This document shows, one piece after another, positions 8,314 to 27,857 of a stretch of 64,000 nt of DNA (position 1 is the first letter of the stretch; each line of letters begins with the position of its first letter). The position numbers and the translations under genes are program-made. The stretch covers positions 1,550,001 to 1,614,000 of the forward strand of contig JBLDXI010000054.1 in the NCBI GenBank assembly GCA_047495785.1, in the 5' to 3' direction. Source of the DNA: Lepidodermella squamata. Its lineage: Eukaryota; Animalia; Gastrotricha. The notes beneath the pieces were generated by a model that saw only the letters and a program-made list of their open reading frames with translations, was not told the origin of the DNA and did no database searches.

Positions 8314-11300
8314 TCAAAAGCCGTCCGTGTATCCCTGAGGCTGTCTCGGATCGCTCATAGCTCGAACAATAGGCCTGCTAGTATCCGGGTCCAAAATTCT
8401 CTCAACAGCTTGAATGATCGAAAAATAACTGCCGCCATTCACCGTTTGATTCTTGTGACCGTATTGATTCTTCAAAATTTCCAACAAATTCACCGGGACA
8501 TTACCGTCACGCTCGAATTGAATAGCCTCCGGGTACAACTGGTGATGAATTCGAGCCGCGTCGATGGACTCCTTCAAATCTTGGCCGAAAAACAGATTTC
8601 TCATCGCGATTGTCGCGACGCCAGATGTAATTTTGCTGCCTCCGGCGCCGCCGATAATTAACCGAACTGAGTAATTAGGGTCATCGCTGTCGGTTTTGTG
8701 GACGAATATCGACGGGCACATGGAGGAGATGGGACGTTTACCGGGTTTGATAGCATTTTCGCGGCTTTGAACCAAGCCCCAAGAGTTGGGCTTTTTCGAT
8801 GTTGAAAAATCGTCCATTTCATTGTTGAATATTATACCTGTTCGTTTTCCAATAATGCAGCTTCCGAAGCTAGAAAAAGTGAAAACAATTGAAAATTTTG
8901 AGCTAATAATAATTATGAAAAATATTAGTAAATAAATTAGTTAATAGGAAAATATTTAGGAATTTTCTGAACCATTAAAATTTGTACATTTTCAAAGAAA
9001 GCAGCAGGGCATGTCTCTTTGAAGTACAGTGTCCGAAATTAGGTCAAATAGGGATCCACCGTAATTTTTAATTTTTCCAATAATTAACGAAAATTAAAAT
9101 GAAGTCCGAAAGCGATCGAAAACTTTATTCTAAATTTTGTCCGAAATTAGGTCAAAATACCCAAGCGTTCATTTTTGATCCCGCTCCCGAATTACGTATG
9201 CAAGCAATAAAAAATTGAAAATTATGAAATAAATTATGAAAATTCCATTTTTTTCAATTTATGAACAAAAACGTGGCAAACATACTATGTATTAATTGTT
9301 GTAGTAACAGCAACCGCATTTCCAGCGCTATCAATAATCGAAATATGCGATGTCCCGGCCGTCCTCGGCTGCTGGTACACATCAGGCGAGTAATTTCGCG
9401 TCGGCTGGGTCGACGAATCATTAATCAGGCCGCGGATAAAATCCCCGAAATTCACTGACGTCAAATTCGCCACGAAATCGCTCATTTCCGGCACAAAAGA
9501 ACTATCACCCATAAAAGTTCGCTTTGCATAGGCAAATTTGAACGTTTCGATTAAACGGTGGTAAGTCAGTGGGTTTAATTCGTCTTCTTGGTCCATTTTG
9601 TAACCAGATAGGACATTAAGCATGAAGGCGAGAATCGCGCCACTGCCAGGTGGTCGCATGCTGAACATTTTAAGGCCGTCATCTCGGTTCGGAAATTCGA
9701 ATTCGACAGGTTGGCGCCATTCGACTTTGTAGTTTTTGAGATCTTCATTTGTGATTGGCGATCCGGCTTCTTGGAGATCGGCGCTTATATCGTCGGCTAA
9801 TGCACCGGTGTAGTAGTCACTTGCGCCATTTTCGGCGATTCTGCTGAAGGTTTCGGCTAATTTTGGGCAATAGACAGTCTCGCCAGTTCGATACAATTTT
9901 TTCGTCTGAGGATTCCACGTACGCGTCCTTAAGAATGGAAAATTAAACCAATAATTTATTCATTTGGAAAAATCGCATTCGGATTTTACGCGAAATTTCA
10001 TGGCTTTGAAAATTTGAAAATTCGAAATTTCAAATTTTTTCAATTTTTTAAATATAATTTATATGCTAACCCTTTAATACTTCCTGAAATCTCCCTTTCC
10101 CTTCCAGCCCTTTAAGAACTTGTCCATTTTTTTGTTATTTGTAAATTTCAAATTTTTCTGAATTTTTCATTGTCGATGAAACAACTTACAGGAATTCTTG
10201 GAAGCGTGGCTCATTTTTGTGGGAAATGAAATCAGGATCGCTGTGGATTTCATCGATTCCTATCTCGACAGATTTCGAAACTTTGAAGCCCTCTCGGCAT
10301 AGCTTTATTGAAGGTTCAAACAGGCTTTTCCAGGACAATAAGCCAAATTTTGCGTGAATTTCCCCCAGACCAGCCAGGGTACCAGGTACTGCAATCGCAT
10401 GAGGCCCTTAAAAAAAATCACAAAAATAGGGATTTTTCGCGAAAAGTGTGACTTTTCCAGAATTAGAATCCAAAAAGTGCGAAATTTGTAGGATTTTTTA
10501 AATTTTTAGAAAATTAAAATACTATCGAAAAATTACCATAAACCGAGCTGATTTTTCCATTTTCGAACATGTCCTCTGTGGCGGCTAAATACGCCACCTC
10601 CCTAGCATCCACCGTGTAGGCCTGCTGGTTTTTCTGGTCCCAAATTGTGATGAAAGACCCACCGCCGATGCCACTGAAGTGCAAATTGACGACATTATCG
10701 CAGATGATAGCGGCCACAGCTGCATCAACAGCTGCATCAACAGCTGAACCACCCCGGCCTAAAATATCGGTACCGTTTTCGGAACAAATGCCAGAATCTG
10801 CGGCTACAGCTGCGTATCGATAAATGCCCATGGGCGAAGACGAGACTGGAAAATATTAAAAAATTACAATAAATTCAAATTAAATACGTTAATTGAAAAA
10901 TAAAAAATTCCAACTTAAGAATGTATTTTTTCAAATTTTCCTACAAAATTGAATACGTTGAACAAAATTGAACATATTCATTAGTTTTGATTTTTGACCA
11001 ACCTTGATTGAAATCACTTGCAATATTCGGTGTGCGTGTTGTCATTTTAACGCATTTCCCAGGTGCGCTCCAGTTGATTGACCTGACCCCGCACGTGACC
11101 ACACTCGCGCCTATTAGCTTGTAACCCGGGTCACACACAACCCGCCTCTGAGCTCCAGTTCGCGAGTCCCCAAATAAAACATGGCCATTCTGAACCACTG
11201 GTGCCCGGCCACACGTTGGCGTGCAAAAACCGAAACGGCCTTGAGACCAATTGCCGTCGGATTCGCAATTTCGAGATCGAAGGTAGTCAGGCGTGAAATA

Positions 11301-11530
11301 GCCGTCGTAGCATGAAATATTCACCGCCGACCCGGGGCTGATTGTCGAATTTAGCGGCAATACCACACCTGTTCGGCCGTGAATATAGATGCCATTCAAT
11401 AAATCAGGCAAGGGACACGTCTGAAAATTCGAAATGAAAGCCAGGTAATAAATTAACGACTAATTTTGCTCACCCTAGCGTGGGAAAAAGCGAAAAATTG
11501 TAGAAATAAAACAAATTTTGATGTTAACAT
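8314..11530 (-). CDS. GGT: secreted Sushi(CCP)x2 - gamma-glutamyl transpeptidase (glutathione hydrolase), paralog 1
   Basis: Signal exon 11530-11474 (MLTSKFVLFLQFFAFSHAR); exon 11420-11003 has two 4-Cys/W CCP modules; then GGT motifs GGSAVDAA, GIGGG, DAREVA, AVPG, nucleophile GTSH, TTTIN, NNEMDDFS, PISSMCP, GAGGS. Splice phases checked in frame. Confidence 0.92.
9025..9160. repeat. Tc1/mariner-like end fragment with 19-bp direct repeat in a GGT intron
   Basis: tacagtgtccgaaattaggtcaaa at 9025; tgtccgaaattaggtcaaa repeated at ~9139. Confidence 0.4.
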
Positions 11531-12754
11531 TGCCCTGGAAGCAGAATGTTAACTTTGAAAAAATGAGAAGCAAGAAGTAGGTTTTTTTGTGGCTCATATA
11601 AGCGTAATTTATTGCTGATAGAATTCAGGGTATTCAAACATGGTTCTGTCATGAATGATGAAGCTGCAAACAATTCGTTATGTGTAATAGGGCAAGCTAA
11701 GAGGTGAGCCGAGAAAAACGTCACCTCTCGCTAGTTTATGACCAACTATGCAGCGTGACATAGCCCATGCCTGGGAGGCATTGTATCAGTTTGCCGGGCT
11801 CTTGAGCTTGAACTTGAGTTTCCAACACGGCAAAAGTAAGGCCTGTCCTAACTCAACAATTAATTCTTGTTTTATTTTTCCAAGTTTTTACGTTAAAAAT
11901 AATTCGGAGATTGAAATGTCTGCGGTTTTATATTATTTCATTTTTAAAACGCCCCTCTCTAGCAAATACTTTGAATATTCGCCATAAATCAAGGTTTAGT
12001 CATAAAAATAAGAGAAAAGTTGGATAATTATCAGCCCGAGCCCAACTTAATCCGAAGTCAAATTCAAAAATAATTAAATTCAAGGGAAATTCAAGGGTAA
12101 TTCCGCACTTGGAATAAAGTTTACGAAGACAAGTGGACAATATTGTACTTCAAAACCGCTCCACTTTCACCGATGTTCACCTGCGATGGGGCTTTTGTCA
12201 TTTCAACTGGACAATTCGTTAGCTTTACGATAGTTTTATTTTCATGTAACAAATATTTGCGAAGAATCTACATGTGTCAGAAAATATAAACAGAGCGGGC
12301 GATTTTTGGGTTCTGCTAACGAAAATTCGGATGAATTCGGAGAAACAAAAGCAATTGTCTTGCACTGAGCAAGAGATTGGTTAGTTTCGGGACATTTCCC
12401 GCGAATTTAATCAGTATAATACCAACGGCAGTATATTAATGCCGGCAGTTGAAAAAATATGGAGAACACCACAGGAAAACTGTACTGCTACATGGTAATG
12501 ATGATTCATCACCCAAATGCGTGTTTCAATTTTTGTCATGTTTCATGTTTTCCAGTCACGATAATTTAAAAGTGAATTTTATTGCGATAGTGAAAAATTG
12601 AATCAGATGAATAATGAAAAATTAGAAAATTCTATATGTAAAAATAAAAATTTTAATTTTTCGGAGAAAATGTGTCAATAAATTTTTGCTATTAAATATC
12701 TAATAAATTTTGGTTTTATCAAAATATTTTAATAATTTATGCATTTTTCACCTA

Positions 12755-13460
12755 GGGTCCATTTTATCTCGGCTCTCACTTTAACTTCCGAATTTTCGAT
12801 CAATCAATCGTGCATGACCCGCTGAGTAACAGCCCGCAGTACTTAGTCATGAGGGTCACGAGCCGCGGCTGAGTCTAATCAATAATAGCCAGCACAATTG
12901 CACGCGCACTGATGCTGACCTCTACACTTATAGAATATTAAGGCGCACGCTTGCGTACATTCATGTTTGCGCGCGTGTAAACAATAACCAGTTGTTCGCG
13001 ATAGCGTCGGCCGACTCGTTCTATATATAAAAATATCTAATATTCTGTATATCTGAGGAAACAAAGCGAGCCCTTGTATTACACTAAAACTCTGCGACCC
13101 ATCAACATCGCCATATTTTCTACATTTCTCATATTTCTGACCATTTTTCAAATTCACACTCCATTTTTTAACCTACATTTTGAATTTTGAGATAAATCAT
13201 TTAATTAGCTGAATGTAAAAAATATTGATCGCCACCCCAATTCATTTTAATTTTCACAAATTTCTCATCATTTCTCATCATAGCCCATGTCAGACAACCG
13301 CGATGGTCTAATTCCTTGCTTATCCTGTGTTCATTTTTAGCTAACTCGATTTTTGAAGAATTTATAACGTACTCCGTTATTGTCCGCCAATTAGGTCAGC
13401 TTTCATCGCTACATAGGACGATTTAGACCTTTTTTTTAACCTTCCGATCCTTGGCATGCG
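12755..13460 (+). repeat. upstream region duplicated with ~17340-18075 (tandem duplication unit of the transposase genes)
   Basis: Long shared blocks, e.g. atgacccgctgagtaaca...cagtacttagtcatgagggtca and gaggaaacaaagcgagcccttgtattacactaaaactctgcgacccatca. Confidence 0.85.
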
Positions 13461-15956
13461 ATGCGCAAAAGAAAAGTAGCTGATTGGATACTTCAAGAGA
13501 AAGAAGCCAGGCATGGCGGGGAGGAGTACGAAAGACGAGAGCTGAAATACCGTAGAAGGAATACCGGTTCGTTGATACGCCTTTCCAGAATATAGTTTTG
13601 TATTTATTTGCTATTTGACATTCCAGGCGAGCTGTATGTCATGAGAAAAGCCAGCCACGTCAGGGCAAGGGCCGGCGTTCGGTTGATAAACTGCTGCCCT
13701 AAGAAATGCTACGAAAAATTCAGCGATGACCAAATAGCTAGTTTCGAAAGAGCGTACCGCAGCGGCAGAAACCTGCACGAGCAACGCATTTTCATTTCCC
13801 GATTCGCGAACAAATCGCCCCGCAACGTAAGAGCCGTTATCACCTACTCCATTCCGGCGCAGTACGCCCTGCCGAAGCATCAAACAAAGGGCACGATTTT
13901 GCTGGCCGTATGCAAGCGCTTCTTCCTGAAGGCCCTCGATGTTAGCCAGAAATTCGTTAGATACACGCTCGACAACAAGGTGTCTGAAAACGGTCTCACA
14001 GTTCAGCCGGATCTTCGAAAGGCGAGTAGTAACTCGGCGAACTGCCGTCTACAACCGGCGACGATTCAATCGATTAAAGACTTCGTTCAGGTCCGACTTC
14101 ATAGCGCGTAAATATTCTGTCCTATCTATGATCATGCCTTTTGAAATTGTTGTTTCTTATAGACGTTTGAGTCATCACAGAAGGTCGCAGACAAATAGGT
14201 TGTACGTAGACTCGCAGCTGACAGTCAGCTCGCTATACCGGCAGTGGATTGATTTCATAGCGAAAAATCCACAGCCCGATGTAAACAAATGCTGCTACGA
14301 ATCATTCAGAGTGCAATTTAAGGAAAATTTCAAAAATTACAGCTTCACCCAACCGAGAAACGACAGGTTGGTTGAGATTTAAGAGTTCGAAGTTCACTCA
14401 TTTTTTTTTATTATAGATGCAAAGTCTGTGCCCGTTACTCGATGATGTCAAAAGCTGAGCGGGATCGCAACATTTCTTACTACGCCCGTCACCTTCAGGA
14501 GAAAAATTGCAGCCGAGAATTCAGAAGGGCTCGAGTCGATGCTGCGAAGGCTTCACTGCGTGACGATTACAATTCGCCTAAATCGGCCTACTTGCAGTTT
14601 GACATGATGAAGCACTTACTGGTAAGGATAAATACATAGATCTGAGATGTCGTATTAAGAAATTGCGATTCAGACCCCATGCACCAACTTTGCTTATCGC
14701 CACCAAGAAAAATTCATCACGCATTGCTTCACGGTTTTAAATTGCGGAACTGGCAATGCCGTCAATTACTGCTATGACGAAGATCAAGGTAATAGGAATA
14801 CATACTGGAAGAACTGATTAGGAATTTTATTCGTTCATCCCTCGTTTTCATAGGAGGGCAGGGTGCAACAGAAATTGGAACCTGTTTATCGCACTATTTA
14901 ACAACATACTTGGACGAAAATGTCGAACTGGTAACATTGTGCTCAGACAGCACTGTTGGTCAAGGCAAAAACAGGTAATAATTCAAAAAAATGACGCAGT
15001 TCTAATTTAGCCATTGAAAACTTCAAAACTGGCCATTCTTTTCCAGGTTCATTCCTAATGCGATCTTCCACGCTATGAGAAAAATTAATACGGAGAGAGC
15101 CCGTCGTTTCGGACCAGCTCACAAGCGACTGCGAGTGGTTGATCACATGTTTTTGGTGAATTTTTGCCATGGCTGCAGTAACCGTTAACCATTTCATTCT
15201 TTTCACAGATTCCCGGCCATACTCAGGTTAGCAACAAATCTCGTCTTTGATCTTCTTTTCAGCAAATGAAGTTTCCCCATTATGTAGATGGCTGTAGATA
15301 ACGTGCATGGGCTCATCGAGCAGTCGAGAAAACGCCGTGGCAATGTCACGGATCATCTTGAATGGAGGGACATCATCAAGAAGGCCAGGCCATCACCAAA
15401 CCAATATGACGTCGTCGAAATGACGCACGACAAATTTCTGAACCTCAAGGCTAGCCCCAACTACTTCTCAACCCTAACTGACCACAACTCTCTCAAAATC
15501 TCGGAGAATGTCCTCTATCGGTATACTTTTGACGCGGCTAGCAGGCACGAACTGTTGGCTCGAAAGAGCTATGCGGATCTCGAAGATGAGCCCCTCCCAG
15601 ACCTGGCTGCTGATGGGCAAACTAGTGACGATCTGGTCAATAATGGCGTCAAGTTTGACTTGCGTCTGATCTCCTCGAGACTTCGTCCATTTTCTTACAA
15701 CGGCGAGCCTCCACGGGCGTACCAGTCGCGGTTGAAGATCAAATTCGAGAAGAAACTCGATTTGATCCAGTGGCTTATCGATGGCGTATTTTCTCCGCAA
15801 CAACGGGATTTTATTCTCGGATTACCGTGTGACATTACATCGGCAAAGAACAAGGAGCTTTATGACAGCAAAATTGCTCTCCTGGACCAAAAATATCTTC
15901 GCAACGAATGGGACGAAGACGATGACGATTTGAAGGACGCTATTGCTCAATGTTGA
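13461..15956 (+). CDS. Sola1-type DDD transposase (or transposase-derived gene), copy 1, 675 aa, 9 exons
   Basis: Eight GT-AG introns splice to an open frame. Motifs KEARHGGEEY, CCPKKC, VCKRFFLKAL, SHHRR, PRNDRCKVC, QFDMM, YDEDQGGQGATEIGTCL, SDSTVGQGKN, FLIPGHTQMAVDNVHGLIE; three catalytic Asp present. Confidence 0.85.
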
Positions 15957-16388
15957 TTCGCAATGGTTTATTCTTAATTGTTATTCTCGTAGTTTTATCT
16001 ATGTTTGAAAAATCCTGAAATGGATAAATGATCGAAAAACCATAAAAAAATTGAAAATTTAAAACCGTTTTTCAAACAAAAGTTTCGTTTCGCTTCGTTT
16101 GTTTGAGTAACGCATTGTTCGTTCATCTTCACAACTCTTCAAACAACCCTTCAAACAACATTAAGCAATAGAAGCTTGGACGTAACTTACCCGGACAACA
16201 TTTTTAACGATGCTTTAGGTTAGCACTGCGGCCGCAGCTTGGAGCAGGCAAAGCTCGAAATATGAGGGAATCACCGATGAATCAGAAAAGTTTGAGTCGG
16301 CAGAACAATTTAGTTCCCGGGTAACCCGAACAAAAAAAAGTTTATCAAATGCGACTTTTCTCGTGTTTTTTTACGTGTTTTCTAAGTA

Positions 16389-16723
16389 GGGTTTTTTGGG
16401 ATTTAATTTGAAATTAGCGTAATATGTCGAGAATATACTAATAGCTAGAAATATCGTAATTTGATTCAAATAATTGCTTAATTAAAAATGTGTCTCTGGC
16501 GGGGGTTGAACCATCGAACATTGATGCACCAGCCCAACGCCTCACCAACTACGCCACCAGCGATCACATAAATGCTGTTGTTTTTATTGGTTTATAAATA
16601 ACTTGCACTTTGGACTTGGTTGTTTTTTCGACGCCAAGTCCATATTTCATTTTCGAGATTTCTTGACATTGCAAAAAATCTCGACATTTTTACGCTAATT
16701 TCAAATTAAATCCAAAAGAACCC
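16389..16723. repeat. inverted-repeat element enclosing a tRNA-like sequence
   Basis: ggatttaatttgaaattagcgtaatatgtcgaga (16399-16432) pairs with tctcgacatttttacgctaatttcaaattaaatcc (16679-16713). Confidence 0.7.
16492..16563 (-). pseudogene. degenerate tRNA-like sequence (nominal anticodon GGT, Thr)
   Basis: 72 nt; TCGCTGG/CCAGAGA acceptor stem (1 mismatch), A-box TGGCGTAGTTGG, B-box GGTTCAACCC; D, anticodon and T stems mismatched. Confidence 0.6.
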
Positions 16724-18075
16724 CAAAACCGCAATTAAAATCACAGGGTCGATATCAGTCGAAAAAACGCCACTCTATGAATGGCAGAAAAAGTCGTATT
16801 TTTTTCGTGATATCACTGTGCAATTTTTTCATAACGATCAACCTCGCAAAAAACTGGCACGCGCCGTCTACTTTTTTGGGCATTTCTCGCACTAAGACAG
16901 AAATACTCCAATAACAGCAATAAAACCTCCAAATGACTGAATGAATCATCGTTGGCGATGAAAAAAATAGCCACAAAACCCGTAAAAAATAATGCGAACC
17001 AAAAAAACTCTTAAACAGTGTGCACTTTTTTGTTCGGGAAATGAGATCTGCGTCGAATTCGTAATCGTGATGCCCTGTTACAATTTCAGAATAATTCACC
17101 ATAGGCAGCAGACAACCGAGCCCCGAGAAGCATTTGCCGCTATCCATTTGAATACCCAAACGGCTTATATCGGATCTCCCGGACTAGTTTTTGCCTGCTA
17201 CCTAGAACATTTAAGGTGATGATGAATAAGGCGCCATGCTCCATATGCAAAACAGCAAACAGCACGCGCAATGCTGCTGACATTCACATATAAAATATTA
17301 AGACGCATGTTCGAATGTTATTTTATGAATTGATGACCTCGGCTCGCCTTTATTTCGGGTCTCACGCTGTAACTTCGAAATTTTCGAAAAATCAATCGTG
17401 AATGACCCGCTGAGTAACATCCCGCAGTCCGCAGTACTTAGTCATGAGGGTCATGAGCCACGGCTGAATATAACCAATAATAGCCAGCACAATCGCACGC
17501 GCACTGATGCTGACCTCTACACACATGAAATATTAAGGCGCACGCTCGCGTACATTCATGTTTGCGCGCGTGTAAACAATAACAAGTTGTTCACGATAGC
17601 GTCGGCCGACTCATTCTATATATAAAACCATCTAATATTCTGTATATGCGAGGAAACAAAGCGAGCCCTTGTATTACACTAAAACTCTGCGACCCATCAT
17701 CACCGCAACATTTGCTATATTTTTCCTATTTCTGACTATTTAACATTTAAAATTCGAGCTCCATTTTTAACCTTAAATTTATAATTTTTAGATAAATCAG
17801 TCGATTAGTTTTCGAACGATGTAAAAAATATTGATAATCATCCCCAATGCATTTCATTTTTCACTGATTGCATATTATTTTCATTATAACCCATGTCACA
17901 CAATGGCTATTGTTGGCCTATCATTTGAGGCGAACTCGATTTTTTAAGTCGTTCGACAACAATCTTAAAACAATATTTTGTACTCCATTATTCTCTGTCA
18001 ATTCACCCTACTTTCATCTCCAAACTCCACATAGGCCGATACACACCTTTCTCAACTTTCTCCCCTTTACATACG

Positions 18076-20605
18076 ATGCGTAAAAGAAAAGTAGCTGATT
18101 GGATACTTCGCGAGAAAGCAGCAAGGCATGGCGGGGAGGAGTACGAAAGACGGGAGCTGAAATACCGTAGAAAGACAACCGGTTCGTTTAAATTTTCTAT
18201 GCTTTTCCCAAGAAAAAGCTATCAATTTAATGAGACACAGCATTAAAATGGTTTGATATTCCAGGTGAACTGTATGTCATGAGAAAAGCCAGCCACGTCA
18301 GGGCAAGGGCCGGCGTCCGACTTATCAACTGCTGCCCCAAGAAGTGCTACGAAAAATTCAGCGACGACCAGATTGCTAATTTTGGAAATGCTTACAGAAG
18401 CAGCAAAAGCTTGCATGAGCAACGGATTTTCATTTCCCGTTTCGTTAGCAAATCTCCCCGTAACATCCGAGCCGTTATTACCTACACAATTCCCTCACAA
18501 TACGCTCTGCCTAAATTTCAAACCAAAGGGACAATTGCCATCGCTGTATGCAAGCGTTTCTTCCTCAAAGCTCTTGATGTCAGCAAAGATTTTGTAAAAT
18601 ACACCCTCACCCACAAGTTAGCTGATAATGGCCTGGAAATTCTACCGGATCTTCGGAAGGCGAGTAGCTCATCGGCGACCTGCCGACTGCAACCTGCAAC
18701 AATTCAATCGATCAAAGATTTCGTTCAGGTCCGACTTCACAGCGCGTAAGCATTCTGGCGCATAAATCGTGGTTATAAGATTTCAGTTTCTAATAGACGT
18801 TTGAGCCATCACAGAAGGTCGCAGACAAATAGGTTGTACGTGGACTCAAAGTTGACAGTCAGCGCGCTATACCGGCAATGGATTGATTTCATCGCGAAAA
18901 ATCCACAGCCCGATGTAAACAAATGCTGCTACGAATCATTCAGAGTGCAATTTAAGGAAAATTTCAAAAATTACAGCTTCACCCAACCGAGAAACGACAG
19001 GTTGGTTGAGATTTAAGAGTTCGAAGTTCACTCATTTTTTTTTATTATAGATGCAAAGTCTGTGCCCGTTACTCGATGATGTCAAAAGCTGAGCGGGATC
19101 GCAACATTTCTTACTACGCCCGTCACCTTCAGGAGAAAAATTGCAGCCGAGAATTCAGAAGGGCTCGAGTCGATGCTGCGAAGGCTTCACTGCGTGACGA
19201 TTACAATTCGCCTAAATCGGCCTACTTGCAGTTTGACATGATGAAGCACTTACTGGTAAGGATAAATACATAGATCTGAGATGTCGTATTAAGAAATTGC
19301 GATTCAGACCCCATGCACCAACTTTGCTTATCGCCACCAAGAAAAATTCATAACGCATTGCTTCACGGTTTTAAATTGCGGAACTGGCAAAGCCGTCAAT
19401 TACTGCTATGACGAAGATCAAGGTAGAAACAATGGAACAACTAGTTATGATTGCCATTCTATCGTGTTTCTTTCCCATAGGAGGGCAAGGCGCGACAGAG
19501 ATCGGCACCTGTTTATTGCACTATTTAACAACATATCTGGACGATGATGTCGAACTGGTTACATTGTGCTCGGACAGCACTGTTGGTCAGGGCAAAAACA
19601 GGTAATAATTAAGAAAAATAGTTAACCATCGAAACGTGAAGCGTGAAGAGAAAATACGTTTCTGACTTGGGTTTTAATGACCGTTTCTACAGATTCATTC
19701 CGAATGCGATATTTCACGCTATGAGAAAGATCAACGCGGAGAGGGCTCGTCGCTTGGGACCTGCCCACAAGCGTCTGCGAGTAGTTGATCACATGTTTTT
19801 GGTGAGTTTTTGCCATACCTGCTGTAATCGCTAACCATTTCTATCTTTGATCATTTCAAACAGATTCCCGGCCATACTCAGGTTAGTCAGAAAGCTCATC
19901 TTAGTTATTGACTGAATCATTCATTCCTTTGCATAGATGGCTGTAGATAACGTGCATGGGCTTATCGAGCAGTCGAGGAAACGCTGTGGCAATGTCACTG
20001 ATCATCTTGAATGGAGAGACATCATCAAGAAGGCCAGGCCATCGCCAAACCAATATGACGTCGTCGAAATGACCCACGACAAATTTCTGAACCTCAAGGC
20101 CAGCCCCAACTACTTCTCAACCCTAACTGACCACAACTCTCTCAAAATCTCGGAGAATGTCCTCTATCGGTATACTTTTGACGCGGCTGGCAGGCACGAA
20201 CTGTTGGCTCGGAAGGGCTATGCGGATCTCCAGGACGAGCCCCTCTCAGACCTACCGGCTGATGGGCAAACAAGTGAAGATCTGGTCAATAATGGCGTCA
20301 AGTTTGATCTGCGTCTGGTCTCCTCGAGACTTCGTCCATTTTCTTACAACGGCGAGCCTTCACGAGCGTACCAGTCGCGGTTGAAGATCAAGTTCGAGAA
20401 GAAACTCGATTTGATCCAATGGCTCATCGATGGCGTATTTTCTCCGCAGCAACGGGATTTCATTCTTGGATTACCGTGTGACATATCTTCGCCGACGAGC
20501 AAGGAGCTTTATGATAGCAAAATCGCTCTTCTGGACCAAAAATATCTTCGCAACGAATGGGATGAAGATGATGACGATTTGATGGACGCTTGCGCCAAAA
20601 GTTGA
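18076..20605 (+). CDS. Sola1-type DDD transposase (or transposase-derived gene), copy 2
   Basis: Same 9-exon structure and motifs as copy 1, open frame, DDD intact; ATG at 18076 (MRKRKVADWILREKAARHGG). Confidence 0.85.
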
Positions 20606-20990
20606 TTCAATGTTACTTTTGCCCAATTATTGTGCTCAACCTTGTTTTGTCTAAAAATGGTTCTTGAAATAACATGAAAACACAATTGAACACAATGAAC
20701 ACAATTGAAAAACTTCCAGCGAACCTTTAAACAACGCTTTTTGAAAGTGAAGCAAAAAATATATTTTGCAGAGAAAGGGGCTGATTTATTGGCCTACCTA
20801 CTGATAACATGAGTGAACACAGCAATATATGCAAATATTCCAGCTGAAAGCTGAACACTGATCAACTAAATTTGCCTTTTGCAACAAAATCGCTAAGATC
20901 CATTTTTTCTCTTGATTTTTCATAATGCAGTACGAATGTCATTGAAATGAGCCCTGTGTATATCTCCAGAGGTTCAAAAACTTGATTCAG

Positions 20991-23811
20991 CTAAAACCCG
21001 TCCGTGTAGCCCTGCGGCTGACGTGGGTCGCTCATAGCGTGTATGACCGCGCGTTTCATATCCGTGTCCCACATTCGCTCGATGGCTTGGACCGCCGAAA
21101 AGTACGCCGCTTGGTCAGCTTCCTGTCGCGTGTGGCCGAATTCACGCTTCAGTACATCAAGCAGATTCGTCGGAGCAGAACCGTCGCGCTCGTACTGCAG
21201 TGCCTCGGGGTATAGCTGGTGATGCAAGCGAGTCGCATCAACCGATTGCTTGATATCTTGGCCGAATACCAAAATTCGAACGGCTACGTCAACGGTGCTA
21301 GTCGCGGTTTTTGTGCCACCAGCAGCACCTACAACAAGACGTACTGAGAACGTGGTTTCGTTCGCCATTTTTTGGACGAAGATTGTCGGGCACATTGAGG
21401 AGACAGGGCGTTTTCCGGGTTTGATAGCATTGGCTCGGCTTTGTAACAGACCGGCCGCGTTGGCCTTCTTGCTCGTTGAGAATGCGTCCATTTCATTGTT
21501 GAAGTAAATGCCAGTTCGGCGACCAAATACTGCACTGCCAAAGCTGGAAGGCAAGACATAGTTTAGTACAAATATCAAGTTCCAGATTATCTCCTGGAAA
21601 TCCTTGAAATTTCTCAAACAGGAGAAAGCAACTTCACTTCATTTTCAAAGAGGAATTTTCTTTTGACTGGGACCTTACATGCTTGATAGTGTTCATCATA
21701 TTTTCTTAATGCTGGTAGCAATAGTAAGATGAAAGCTGAAAGCTGATCTTACTTTGAATTAATTGTCGACGATACAGAAATCGCATTTCCAGCCCCATCG
21801 ATGATCGACAAATGCGATGTAGTGCCACCCCTCGGCTGCTGGAACATCGTTGGCTCGTAACTTTTCGTCAAAGGCCGAGCCGCCGTGTCATTAATCATCG
21901 TCCGATACGTGCGTCCATAAGCCGCTGCCGTTAAATTAGCCACCCACGCCGTCATTTCCGGCTGGAACGAACTGTCACCCATCATACTCATCTTCGCATG
22001 AGCGTATTTGAATGTTTCAATCAAACGGTGATGAGTTAGAGGGTTCAGCCCATCTTCAGGCCTTAGGTTGTAATTTGAGAGAATATTCAGCATAAACGCG
22101 ACCAGAGCACCACTAGCAGGCGGGCGGGGTGTGAACAGTTTCAGGCCATCAGTTCGGCCGGGCATTGCGAATTCGATAGGTTGCCGCCATTGAACGCGAT
22201 AACGCTTCAGATCGTCGATTGTTATCGGGGATTTGATGTCTTTCAGGTCTGATACGATGTCGTTTGCGAATGAGCCGTTGTAGAAGGCCGCAGATCCGTT
22301 GTCGGCGATTCGAGTTAGCGTGGTCGCTAGACTGGGACACGTCATTATATCGCCAGCTCGGTAGAGACGACCAGTTCTCGCATTTGTGATAAAGGTCCTG
22401 TTTATTTTTAAATAAAATATTGGTACAATATGTTTCTGTAACATGTTGTTGACATTTTTTGAAATTTCAGAAATGACAATTGGGAATTCTTAGGAATAAA
22501 AATTCCGATATTTCCTGATAGATATTTCCTAAACATTAAAATACTGGATTTACTTGTGATCGCGAAATGGTGTTTGATCTTTTGTCGCGTTGAGTACTGT
22601 ATTTCGGTTGATTTCGTCGATGGCGATCTCGCCAGCTTTTGTCAGTTTGAAACCAGTTCGACACAGCTGGATTGCCGGTTCGAAGAGGCTTTTCCATGGC
22701 AAAAGACCCCATTTCGCGTGCACTTCGCCAAGTCCAGCTATAAAGCCAGGCACCGCAATCGCATAAGGTCCTATAGTGAATAGGAAATAATTTAAGATAA
22801 CAACATTTTTGGAATCTTTGAATAACTCACCAAATACCGAGCTGAGTGTTCCATTCTCGAAAAGATCTTCATTCGCGGCCAACGGAGCAACCGAACCGGC
22901 ATCGACGGTCCAGCCACGTTGATTTTTCTGATCCCAAATGGTCATGTGCAATCCACCGCCTATGCCGCCCATGTGAAAGTTGACGACGTTATCGCAGGCC
23001 AGGGTGGCTACGGCAGCATCGATTGCCGATCCGCCGCGAACTAGCACGGAATTACCGATTTCGGAGCATTCGCCAGCTTCAGAGGCCACTGCAGCGTAGC
23101 GGTAGACGCCCATAGAGGATTTTGAAGCTGAAATTGAAATTATAAAACATTTTAAAAGTAAAATTTGATTTGAATTGAACTGAAATTTGAAAAATTTAAG
23201 AATAAGAAATTCTTTGATCAAAAGACAGAAGTTTTTTTCCAAGAATAGGAAGTTCATTTTCTCACCTTGACCGAATTCACTTAGCATGTACTCGTTACCA
23301 GGCAACGGTCTGGGTAACCTCGTGCAATTACCCGGGCGGCTCCAAGTCAGCGTTTTGGCATCACAAACAATCGAGCTAGCTCCAGCCAGTCTGAAATTTG
23401 GAATGCAAACGACCCGCCTTTCAGCACCAGCTCGCGATTCGCCGTCCAAGACCTGACCGGACGTGACCGTGGGAGGGCGACCGCAGGTTCCAGTACACGA
23501 CCCAAAGGCTCCAGTCCTCCACTCGCCCGTATTTCCATCACAAGTTCGCGTTTTCCCGGTCGGGGCGATGTAAAACCCGTCTTGGCAGACAATATTCACG
23601 ACCAGGCCAGCTGCGGCTTGGCTGAGAGGCGACAGCACGGTACTGGCATTGCCTGATACATATACCCCATTCGTCAAATTCGGAAGCGTGCAGGTCTGAT
23701 TGGAAAATTAAGATAAAAATCGACAAAAATGGCGTAAATCGATACCTTAGCTGCTACTAGAGCAGCAGACGCGGCCACTAGCGTGAAGTTGAGCGCTAAT
23801 TTAACAAACAT
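20991..23811 (-). CDS. GGT: secreted Sushi(CCP)x2 - GGT-like protein, paralog 2 (substrate-binding residues altered)
   Basis: Signal exon from 23811 (MFVKLALNFTLVAASAALVAAK); two CCP modules; GGT motifs with TTSH nucleophile, but DAGSVA instead of DAREVA and NNEMDAFS instead of NNEMDDFS. Confidence 0.9.
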
Positions 23812-25189
23812 AAATAGATCAGCTCAACTGAAGCGAGTCTGCAGGCGGTGGCTAGGGCGTTGATTTATGCGTCTCAAAAAACGCGCATTTAGCACGTGCT
23901 TACGCACTTACCGGTTTTTTGTAACGAAAAAAATTAGTGCACCGGCCAGGGTGTCCGTTTTTACTATTAGGTGTAATGTCTGGGACCAGGCTTGCGTGCT
24001 GCGGTAATTATTGCACTATTGCGACATGAAATCAGGCGACGCGAAATTCAGCAAGCAGCCTTCATCGCAGATTTTGTCTGGTGGAATGGTGTCAAGTCCA
24101 GGTGTCACGCACGTCACGCCAAAAATAGTCCTTTCTCATGATCACGTGGTCAGTTTTATGATAATTAATAGAATTTCGACCTAGTTGATATGTACCAACC
24201 CCCTATCAGCATGACGTTCAATGCTAAGGTCGAAATTTATCATTTTAAGAATTATTCAAGATGTTTAAAAAACGTCAAGGTCGATTGAATTTTCTGTAGT
24301 TTGTGGCTGTCCGAAATAAGCCGGGTGATTTCGTTTTTTCTGGCTGAATTTCAGGACAAATGAGCAATTCAAATTTGTTCTAAACATGATCATCTAACTG
24401 AAGTCGATGCGCTCTTTCTTTTGCGCTTTTTTCCGGCTACAAAATACTGCAGAATAAAAAAGTTGGCAATTTTTTACCTCGGCGCACACCTGCGAAGAAG
24501 TGCAACCATTATTCGTAAAAAAATCCGTTTCTCATATTTCAGATGTCATTTGAAAGGCGGGACTCCGGACTATCTTCTACATTTTGAACGGTATTTTTAT
24601 CCACCAGGGTTGAGGAGAAACGCGCGCTCAAAGTCAAAAGTGTCCGAAATTATTCCGTCCGAAAAAGGACCGCGTTACAGTATGTGCAAATTTTAAAAAT
24701 CAAAACATTTTCAGGTTTTTTGGGGAAAGGTGTGTCTCTACAAGTGAAAATGAACCCATACATATTTTACGCTTTACGCTTCGATAATATCAATAAATGG
24801 TCTTGCCCGGGAGCCTCCTCCAGTCAAAGGAAAACAGCGATTGAGAAGATGCGTTATACGACTTTATTGATGCATGTGTGACTTTGAACGTGATCTGCAC
24901 ATTAACATTATCCAAGACTTTCACAGGTTTTGTTTTCAAAATCTAAGCCGACCTAATAAGGTCTTTTGGCATACCTAATAAGCACGACGGCCACAGGCTA
25001 ACTTAATGAGAACAATTCTTTAGAAGACTATGACTAATTAGGTTGCAAAAAAGTGAAAACAAAGGAACTGATAAAATTTTAAGCTGAGATTTAGCCGAAA
25101 AATAGCGAATAGTGAATATGACTCGGGAATTTGCGGTTTTGATTATTGCCCTCTACCTTGAGGCAAAGAAAACTATTAAGCTGTCGATG

Positions 25190-27606
25190 CTAGAAGCCAT
25201 CAGGATAGCCTTGACGACGGCGATCACTGACAGCTCTTATAACAAAGCGAGCCTGATTCGGGTCAAAAACACGCTCGATCGCGGTGATTGTGCTGAAAAA
25301 GCTGGCTGCATTCTCCAGCTGATCTACGTGGCCGAAATCCCGTTTCAGAACGGCAAGCAACTCTCTAGGCGCAGCATCTTCCTTCTCGTACTGAAGAGTT
25401 TCAGGAAACAGCTGATGATGCAGCCGGGAAGCATCAACAGCTTGCTTTATATCTTCCCTAAGAAACAAATTTCGAAACGCAACGTAGGCGACTCCAGTCG
25501 TAATCTTCGAACCACCGCCCCCTCCGATAACCAGCCTTGGGTAGTAGATAGATTTATCACCCTCACCGTGCTTCTGAAGAATGACAGTCGGGCACATTGA
25601 AGAGACAGGCCGTTTACCAGGTTTGATCACATTAGCTCGGCTGGGTGTTAGGCCCCAATTATTAGGCAATTTTGTGGTCGAAAAGTCGTCCATTTCATTA
25701 TTGAAAACAATACCTGTCCTTTTACCAACAATACCACTGCCAAAGCTGGTTGAAAAGGTTCAGCACAAGTTTTAGGGGTAATCTCGCCAAACTTACTAGG
25801 TATTGATGGTTGAAGTCAAAGCTACAGCATTCCCAGCTCCATCAATGATAGACATGTGCGAGGTCCCAGCTGTTCTAGGCTGCTGATACATCTCCATTGT
25901 CGCGTATTTGTTAGTGGGCTGGGTCGATGTGTCATTGATTAGGCTTCGAATGAATTCACTGTAATCATGCGATGTCAAATTATTGACTAAATCCTCCATT
26001 TCAGAATGGAAGGAACCATCCCCCATCAGGGTACGCTTTGCATAGGCGAATTTGAAAGATTCAATGAGGCGGTGGTAGGCCAGTGGGTTTACAACATCTT
26101 TCGCAGTAATATTGTACCCGGCCATGATATTCAAGATAAAAGCTAGAATAACCCCACTCCCAGGCGGTCTCATGCTGTATAGCTTGAACTCTTCCTTATC
26201 CGAGTTCGAAAACGAAAATGCGACTGGTTCACGCCATTCTGGTTTGTAGCGGCGAAGATCCTCAGCGGTAATCGGCGAGCCAGCATCTTTCAAATCAGCC
26301 ACTATGTCTTCAGCGAGGGATCCGTTGTAGAAATCGGATGGACCATTCAAAGCGATCCGTTCCATCGTCTTGGCCAAAGTAGGGTACTTCATCAAATCTC
26401 CTGTTCTATAAGACGCCCCAGTTGCTGGGTTTGTGATCAGCTTCCTAAAGATTATGAAAGCTGGAAGCTGAATTGTTTAACAAAACTGTTTATACCTGAA
26501 TTCGGTGAAAATCGATTGGTCTTGGACCTTGGAATTTGTTGAATTTATGAACTCATCGATAGCAACTTCGACTGATCTTGAAACTTTGAAGCCATCGATG
26601 CACAGTCGCTGGGCGACCTGAATCAGCTGAGACCACGGCAGTCGACCGAACTTCGCATGGACTTCCCCCAATCCGGCTACGAACCCTGGAACACCTATAG
26701 CGTAGCCACCTTTACACAAATTTACGCAGGTAAAGAATTCAATAATTATTCCAAGTTTACTATAGAGCGAAGATATTGTTTTGTCTTCGAACATGTCCTC
26801 AGTCGCTGACAAGTAGGCCACCTCCCTGGAGTCTATCGTATACGCTTTCTGGGTTTTCTGGTCCCAAATTGTCATGAAAAATCCACCTCCAACCCCTGCA
26901 AAGTGAATATTCACGACATTGTCGCAAAACGCTGTCGCCACGGCTGCGTCTACCACCGAACCACCCAATGCCAGGATTTCAGTCCCAACCTCGTTGCAGA
27001 TTCCTGCGACTGAATTCACAGCAGCAAACCGGTAGACTCCCATGGGCGATGGAGATACTAGGATAAATTCTTACAGTGAGAAGGTAAATGAGAAGCTTAA
27101 AACTCACCATATGTGAACTCGTTAGCTAAATTAGAGCTTGCTGCCGATTTTGGAATGACTTTATGACAAGTTGTTGGGTTAGACCAGTTGAGGCTTATGA
27201 CCCCACATAGAATAGTGCTACTACCGTTAATGAGCCTGTACCCATCATCACAGATAATTCTCCGCTGAGCTCCAATTCTCGAATCGCCGTTCAGAATTTT
27301 CCCATGCTCAACTTTTGGCGCGGGGCCACACGTTGGATTACAAGTTCCGAAAGGATCGGGTAGCCATAGACCATCCGATGAGCATGCTCGAGTTCTGACA
27401 CCCTCGCCTATCGCGAAACCTTCGAAACAAGATATTGATACATTAGTTCCTTCCTGGACTTCAGTTCTTTGTGGCAAGACAGTCCTCAGCTCCGTTTTAA
27501 GGTAGACTCCATTACTTAGGAATGGCAAGAAACATTTCGCGGATGAGCTTTCGAGGCATATCGAAACAATGAAGAGGATCACAATAGTTGTACACTGCTG
27601 GTTCAT
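25190..27606 (-). CDS. GGT: secreted Sushi(CCP)x2 - gamma-glutamyl transpeptidase, paralog 3
   Basis: MNQQCTTIVILFIVSICLESSSA signal, two CCP modules, DSREVA, GTSH, TSTIN, NNEMDDFS, PVSSMCP, GGGGS all intact. An alternative in-frame ATG lies 7 codons upstream. Confidence 0.92.
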
Positions 27607-27857
27607 CGCATGAGATGGTTGAAACATCTTGTATAGAGTGTATGAAATGATATATAATAAAATATTATTTCTTCTTAGAGCATAGTAGGTAATAACAACA
27701 TACGTATTATGTCTAGCGAGCGTGGTTTTTTCTCTCAAGCTCGGTAAATATTTGCTTTGTAAAAAATGATTCATTATTAGCCCAACCCAACAGACCGTGC
27801 GGTATTAGAGAAATTTAGTTCAAACGCAAAATTTTGACGGATATTTATTCGTAATTA

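Follow-up and report, generated by a model that had tools for sequence, protein, structure and literature searches.

The 64,000-nt stretch of Lepidodermella squamata DNA analysed here (the window; contig JBLDXI010000054.1, positions 1,550,001 to 1,614,000) carries three gamma-glutamyltranspeptidase (GGT) genes, all on the minus strand and in the same orientation, as found by tblastn with the exon peptides of the middle one, P2. P2 is an intact six-exon gene of 735 codons (20991-23811) that is transcribed and under strong purifying selection. Two defining features of canonical GGT, the Arg and Asp known as R107 and D423 in human GGT1, are both missing from P2, where Gly243 and Ala572 stand in their place, and the equivalents of all ten residues of the catalytic set (T381, H383, T399, N401, E420, D422, S451, S452, G473 and G474) are retained. 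At a probability of roughly 45%, we tentatively read P2 as an amidohydrolase that processes itself, has a changed or relaxed specificity for acyl groups and does not really function as a glutathione transpeptidase.

A first-pass annotation of this stretch had reported that the motif DAREVA reads DAGSVA in P2 and that EMDDFS reads EMDAFS, and both substitutions lie exactly where it had put them. The codons at 22897-22892 (minus strand) are GGT TCG and encode Gly243-Ser244 in place of human R107-E108, for which P1 and P3 have AGG GAG; the codon at 21485-21483 (minus strand) is GCA and encodes Ala572 in place of human D423. Searching solved structures with phmmer aligned exon 3 without gaps to the human GGT1 heavy chain (4gdx_A), with V-D-A-G-S-V-A-P lying on I-N-A-R-E-V-A-P at chain positions 107 and 108, and aligned N-N-E-M-D-A-F-S of exon 6 to N-N-E-M-D-D-F-S of the human light chain, in which position 43 corresponds to residue 423. 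In the alignment to E. coli GGT (2dbu_B), Ala572 falls on D433. The alignment to human GGT1 that the annotation had proposed as a check is ungapped at both the R107/E108 and the D423 sites.

Changes found only in P2 among the three paralogs lie at four more positions around the pocket: firstly, Ala582 (GCC, 21453-21455, minus strand), placed by alignment to 2dbu_B and 4gg2_B, replaces the lid-loop aromatic that is F433 in human GGT1, Y444 in E. coli and Trp in P1 and P3, a column that in most relatives holds F (34), Y (11) or H (4); secondly, the Y403-equivalent (residue 552) is Asn; thirdly, Thr529 replaces the Gly (G380) that 91% of relatives have directly ahead of the nucleophile, Thr530, the T381 equivalent (codons ACT ACA, 21818-21823, minus strand); fourthly, Thr631 replaces I477, three residues past the oxyanion glycines. 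Relative to human GGT1, P2 is accordingly R107G, E108S, Y403N, G380T, D423A and I477T, with Ala at the F433-equivalent. The four additional changes strengthen the idea of a remodelled pocket. The codon of residue 552 is split across an intron (21753-21754 and 21543); it encodes Asn in the window, and one contig from a public run (X1, below) has two other letters there that would make it His, so that the Y403-equivalent position appears to be polymorphic in P2.

We determined how unusual these residues are in the family from the best 150 matches of an exhaustive exon 5 profile search against 1.84 billion representatives. The R107 column is covered by 113 of these matches, 103 with Arg and four with Lys, the D423 column holds Asp in 104 of 114, and a single other sequence with a kept nucleophile, P0048 (ENA), also lacks both equivalents. 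Compared with 70 full-length relatives, P2 deviates at six of the 78 most conserved columns (R107, G380, T397, D423, I477 and one Val to Ile), a total that is not unusual beside the two of P1 and the five of P3. At least two nucleotides, and up to three, had to change in every one of the E to S, W to A and G to T replacements, which points to old, repeated substitutions at just these sites. Together with the counts above and the R, E and D of both sister genes, this makes the pattern more than a chance effect.

The sister genes place these changes in time. P1 carries D-A-R-E-V-A and E-M-D-D-F-S, P3 carries D-S-R-E-V-A and E-M-D-D-F-S, and the three paralogs form one clade with a Shimodaira-Hasegawa-like approximate likelihood ratio test (SH-aLRT) support of 100 in a quick tree search that does not settle the branching order inside the clade. 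The loss of R107, E108 and D423 is, from these comparisons, derived on the P2 branch. Between paralogs, synonymous divergence (dS) was 1.97 or not computable, meaning that synonymous sites are saturated; the duplication is thus old, and we used polymorphism for the selection test instead. The terminal branches measure 0.29 (P1), 0.47 (P2) and 0.38 (P3), so that of P2 is only moderately longer, and 67 amino-acid changes are private to P1, 109 to P2 and 103 to P3. A general relaxation of P2 was considered and rejected, since its count of unique changes is comparable to that of P3 and shows no general decay.

Three public runs bear on expression: X1 (2015, organism A), X2 (2024) and X3 (2014, organism B). 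Spliced P2 contigs occur in X1 and X3, two runs from two studies; contigs of X2 hold the P2 introns, identifying that run as genomic. One X1 contig runs past 23825 at the 5' end of the mRNA, and we take the reverse complement of this extension to be the template-switch oligo of the SMART/Smart-seq protocols. On that reading, X1 would be a cDNA run and transcription of P2 would begin some 14 nt ahead of the ATG. Among the 40 best-supported of 105 differences between the window and other haplotypes are 24 in coding sequence, 22 of them synonymous and two non-synonymous; for this subset the ratio of non-synonymous to synonymous polymorphism (pN/pS) is 0.03 and the binomial P is 6e-12 under neutrality with 24% synonymous sites. 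These data show that P2 is transcribed and strongly constrained, and they remove the suggestion of the first-pass annotation that the gene might turn out to be unexpressed and neutrally decaying.

They also bear on the possibility that P2 is a decaying duplicate, or an artefact of assembly or sequencing. Redundancy among three tandem copies could allow the loss of one, and repeats that resemble mobile elements crowd the spacer beside the gene. Against this stand the intact frame of 735 codons with canonical splice sites and spliced contigs in two runs, the 22:2 ratio just given, and the Ala572 codon, which is reproduced in independent runs: it is unchanged in the X1 and X2 contigs that cover 21217-21494 and differ from the window at six nearby sites, and so is not an assembly error. 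Assembly artefact was rejected on this codon together with the several steps that the codon changes need, and decay or artefact as a whole is so improbable as to be effectively refuted. The Gly243-Ser244 codons are likely identical in the other haplotypes as well; three differences in the contigs that cover them fall outside the listed set.

The DNA of the window is of animal type, with short GT..AG introns, and the transcription unit of P2 spans 20991-23825 (minus strand), with the putative mRNA 5' end at about 23825, the ATG at 23811 and the stop codon at 20991-20993. A TATA-like ATAAAT lies ~40 nt upstream of the mRNA start, and the 3' untranslated region extends to at least 20876, where X1 contigs reach. 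We ran searches exon by exon and used the joined protein for alignment, tree and codon counts. Exon 1 (23746-23811) encodes a 22-residue signal peptide, predicted from its hydrophobic N-terminus; exon 2 (23266-23695) encodes two Sushi/CCP modules (Pfam PF00084, E 4.5e-10), each with four Cys and one Trp; exon 3 (22831-23127) begins the GGT domain after a short linker and holds the Gly243-Ser244 codons, as PF01019 and the alignment to the human heavy chain show; exon 4 (22554-22770) is placed by a junction and a frame check; exon 5 (21753-22397), placed by PF01019 (E 1.5e-51) and by alignment to human GGT1, completes the large subunit, contains the predicted autoprocessing site and opens the small subunit; and exon 6 (20991-21543), placed by PF01019 (E 1.3e-42) and by the human and E. 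coli light-chain alignments, encodes the bulk of the small subunit and ends in the stop codon. Contigs of the public runs show four joints that have GT..AG ends when read on the strand of the gene, namely 23695|23746 in an X1 contig, 23127|23266, 22396|22553 (cut +1) in an X3 contig, and 21543|21753 in both X1 and X3; the junction of exons 3 and 4 comes from the loose end of an X1 contig, with donor and acceptor checked in the sequence. The statement of the first-pass annotation that the frame is intact therefore holds, with junctions seen in public contigs. PF01019 (G_glu_transpept) matches three reading-frame stretches (E 3.9e-36, 1.5e-51 and 1.3e-42) in which exons 2-6 lie and which together cover profile positions 2-511 except about 131-142, and the C-terminus resembles that of other GGTs. 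By homology, P2 is a member of the GGT family, MEROPS T03, of N-terminal-nucleophile (Ntn) hydrolases.

Pseudoenzymes exist in this family, human GGT2 being an example. The first-pass annotation had listed the TSH nucleophile motif, TIN, SS and GG as retained, and all four are present in P2: Ser600-Ser601 (21396-21401, minus strand) are the S451/S452 equivalents and Gly627-Gly628 (21315-21320, minus strand) the oxyanion-hole glycines G473/G474. The corresponding columns are strongly conserved, with T at Thr530 in 68 of 70 relatives, H at His532 in 65 of 70 and G at Gly627-Gly628 in 66 of 70. Loss of residues for chemistry or processing, the mark of a GGT pseudoenzyme, was thus not found, the nucleophile, oxyanion hole and inner shell all being present; only specificity residues are lost, so that pseudoenzyme status is not readable from sequence. 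At the predicted autocleavage site, the sequence context is Thr-Thr instead of Gly-Thr.

P2 might still be a maintained pseudoenzyme, that is to say a secreted protein with the GGT fold, possibly still cleaving itself, whose role would be to bind a ligand or partner, maybe with help from its Sushi modules, and which turns nothing over. The charged head-group binders R107 and D423 and the lid residue are gone; replacing the Arg in E. coli (R114L, R114D) leaves no detectable activity (PMC8062742); secreted GGT paralogs with active-site mutations are known, such as the third venom gamma-GT of Aphidius ervi, which has been called possibly non-functional (PMC4035087); and purifying selection would fit a binding role equally well. 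Yet nucleophile, oxyanion hole and inner shell have kept their full set of ten residues despite saturated synonymous divergence, and the residues lost are exactly those that set specificity and not chemistry. By a rough reckoning, ten unconstrained residues would hardly all be preserved since an old duplication. We therefore hold the pseudoenzyme explanation to be rather unlikely.

The published work on GGT indicates what the missing residues do. In human GGT1, R107 binds the alpha-carboxylate of the donor together with S451/S452, N401 and E420 hold the alpha-amino group, R107 makes a hydrogen bond to the glutamate head group and is joined to D423 by a salt bridge, and Y403 belongs to the acceptor site (PMC6949936); F433 lies within the mobile loop 427-436 (PMC10340724). 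These structures bear out the role in gamma-glutamyl binding that the first-pass annotation had assigned to R107 and D423, and PMC4035087 cites Ikeda 1993 for Arg-107/Glu-108. A literature search on the state of the R107/D423-type residues in human GGT6 and GGT7 returned nothing usable. The joint loss of R107 and D423 is what the salt bridge would predict, since losing one partner leaves a buried unpaired charge. Because small or polar residues stand in for R107, D423, E108, the lid aromatic and Y403, the donor pocket of P2 should be wider, uncharged and uncapped, with its chemistry untouched.

We infer the self-processing, catalysis and substrate nature of P2 from these comparisons, and propose the following mechanism. 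A lineage-specific tandem triplication of a secreted gene with a signal-peptide/Sushi/Sushi/GGT layout would have given rise to a functional P2. Its precursor would enter the secretory pathway and then cleave itself between Thr529 and Thr530, and Thr530, with the Gly-Gly oxyanion hole and the Ser-Ser/Asn/Glu shell, would act as an Ntn amidohydrolase. The acyl-donor pocket would have been rebuilt, the R107-D423 clamp for the donor's alpha-carboxylate and alpha-amino groups becoming Gly and Ala and E108 becoming Ser. High-affinity recognition of glutathione and gamma-glutamyl groups would be lost along with transpeptidation, and another amide would be hydrolysed instead. The glutaryl acylases engineered from GGT suggest, by analogy, that its acyl donor might be dicarboxylic or have a blocked head group.

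Bacterial mutants provide that analogy. The D433N mutant of E. coli GGT no longer transpeptidates, retains 82% of its hydrolytic activity and gains acylase activity on glutaryl-7-aminocephalosporanic acid (glutaryl-7-ACA), in line with the shift that the first-pass annotation had stated; adding Y444A and G484A raises the acylase activity 50-fold, and class IV cephalosporin acylases have a natural Asn at the D433-equivalent (PMC8062742). The engineered D433N/Y444A/G484A enzyme thus loses both the Asp and the lid aromatic, and P2 carries both kinds of change naturally. The parallel is incomplete: D433N and the class IV acylases have Asn where P2 has Ala, and the Arg, which is lost in P2, is kept in them as far as PMC8062742 says. 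P2, a candidate acylase, keeps both oxyanion glycines, unlike the triple mutant with its G484A. P2 also differs from the class IV acylases in its relationships, belonging to a clade with its animal sisters P1 and P3 and having animal proteins as its nearest named matches.

The same mutants are the basis for regarding P2 as a weak gamma-glutamyl hydrolase of the glutaminase or glutathionase type, with a higher Michaelis constant and no transpeptidase activity, so that the paralogs would split kinetic ranges. N401, E420, D422 and S451/S452 remain, and the bacterial mutants D433N, D445A and R109S keep 82%, 40% and 85% of hydrolytic activity (PMC8062742). Nevertheless, Arg, the neighbouring Glu, Asp, lid aromatic and Y403 are all changed in P2, a combination that no tested mutant has; a single exchange of the Arg for Leu or Asp is enough to inactivate the E. 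coli enzyme; and the Arg is grouped among the substrate recognition and binding residues in the review (PMC8062742) and hydrogen-bonds the glutamate head group in the human enzyme (PMC6949936). A weak hydrolase of this kind is, in our estimate, an improbable explanation.

Several points count against an amidohydrolase with altered specificity. B. licheniformis R109S and B. subtilis D445A keep 85% of activity and 40% of hydrolysis respectively (PMC8062742). The remaining head-group ligands N401, E420 and S451/S452, all present in P2, could still bind the glutamyl head group. The kept catalytic residues may serve only folding or self-cleavage. The excess of synonymous changes was counted among the 40 best-supported of 105 differences, and no orthologue with P2's substitutions was found in the protein libraries searched, from which the lineage is absent. 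The first-pass annotation had offered a neofunctionalised Ntn-hydrolase or a self-cleaving pseudoenzyme: the coordinated loss on which it built this pair is real, derived in P2 and set in a constrained gene, and either member of the pair, or a third outcome, residual gamma-glutamyl hydrolysis, may apply.

Comparison with known relatives gives the favoured amidohydrolase reading its context. P2 is homologous to human GGT1 (PF01019, MEROPS T03) over its full length and in both subunits; both proteins are extracellular, P2 by prediction, and share the ten residues of the catalytic set. The exhaustive exon 5 profile search returned best matches at 36-44% identity, and a word search with exon 6 a best match at 46%; it also gave two fragments, 62-63% identical, in which Asp-Asp is retained, and the GGT gene on the contigs of these fragments, from an ENA assembly, has a different structure. 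Among named proteins, those closest to P1-P3 are GGT1-like and come from molluscs, echinoderms and other invertebrates, at 36-46% identity.

Secreted or predicted animal GGT paralogs that lack the Arg and have a Thr nucleophile occur in the nemertean Tubulanus polymorphus, as the 'scoloptoxin SSD14-like' P0032 (Phe-Ser at the R107-E108 site), and in the tunicate Clavelina lepadiformis, as P0014 (Ile-Asp). P0048 has Tyr-Gly at R107-E108 and D423N, and, unlike P2, is also without N401, E420 and S451. The losses of Arg in these three sequences lie on other branches of the tree than that of P2 and are independent events; only P0048 among them is also without Asp423, and none has Sushi modules as far as scanned. 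Together with the gamma-GT of A. ervi these are scattered, uncharacterised, divergent GGTs, none of which pairs the changes of P2 with an intact inner shell.

In a more specific and more speculative form of the favoured reading, which we think rather doubtful, P2 would be a natural animal GGT-derived acylase: a secreted, Sushi-tethered Ntn amidohydrolase without the R107-D423 clamp and the lid, cutting a non-glutathione amide; it would belong to a broader reorganisation, in this genome, of how gamma-glutamyl compounds and amides are metabolised. Candidate substrates of such an acylase are a dicarboxylic-acyl, an N-blocked glutamyl or a larger acyl conjugate. Evolution has here changed, in an expressed and constrained animal gene, the same positions that were mutated in the laboratory to alter GGT specificity, and more; the unchanged neighbours P1 and P3 act as built-in controls in this natural experiment on a change of Ntn-hydrolase acyl specificity. 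P2 is also a candidate source of new amidase or acylase activity and, should it prove inactive, would illustrate cleanly how selection can maintain a GGT pseudoenzyme. The interest would be moderate in both cases and not field-changing: Arg-less GGT paralogs already exist in several invertebrates.

P1 (8314-11597, minus strand, 736 aa) and P3 (25190-27627, minus strand, 744 aa) share the architecture of P2, P3 without the first intron, and both keep R, E, D, the lid Trp, Y403 and G380. By Pfam, each large exon has a G_glu_transpept match, and a Sushi repeat precedes the GGT domain. In all three paralogs (window 8314-27627), a predicted cleavable signal peptide and two Sushi/CCP modules stand where the type II membrane anchor of the human type is usual. 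Six GGT homologues with long N-termini, from other animals, were scanned and none had a Sushi domain; our literature search turned up no paper connecting GGT with Sushi domains. The fusion thus looks lineage-specific.

The intron between the signal-peptide and Sushi exons is 50 nt long in P2 (23696-23745) and 108 nt in P1 (11421-11528) and is absent from P3 (27108-27627), and is a marker of gain or loss within the GGT cluster. P1 exon 3 has a small in-frame tandem duplication, A-V-D-A-A-V-D-A-A-V, in a conserved helix (window about 10700-10760), where P2 and P3 carry the repeated segment once. Within the 9.4-kb spacer between P1 and P2, positions 12830-20605 hold two tandem copies of a unit with multiple open reading frames, repeated about every 4.6 kb; the copies are 81-96% identical. 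Its 222-aa open reading frame lies at 15288-15956 and 19937-20605, the two copies being 94% identical over 208 residues. None of the unit's reading frames has a Pfam match, and the unit probably represents either a segmental duplication or a mobile element of an uncharacterised kind.

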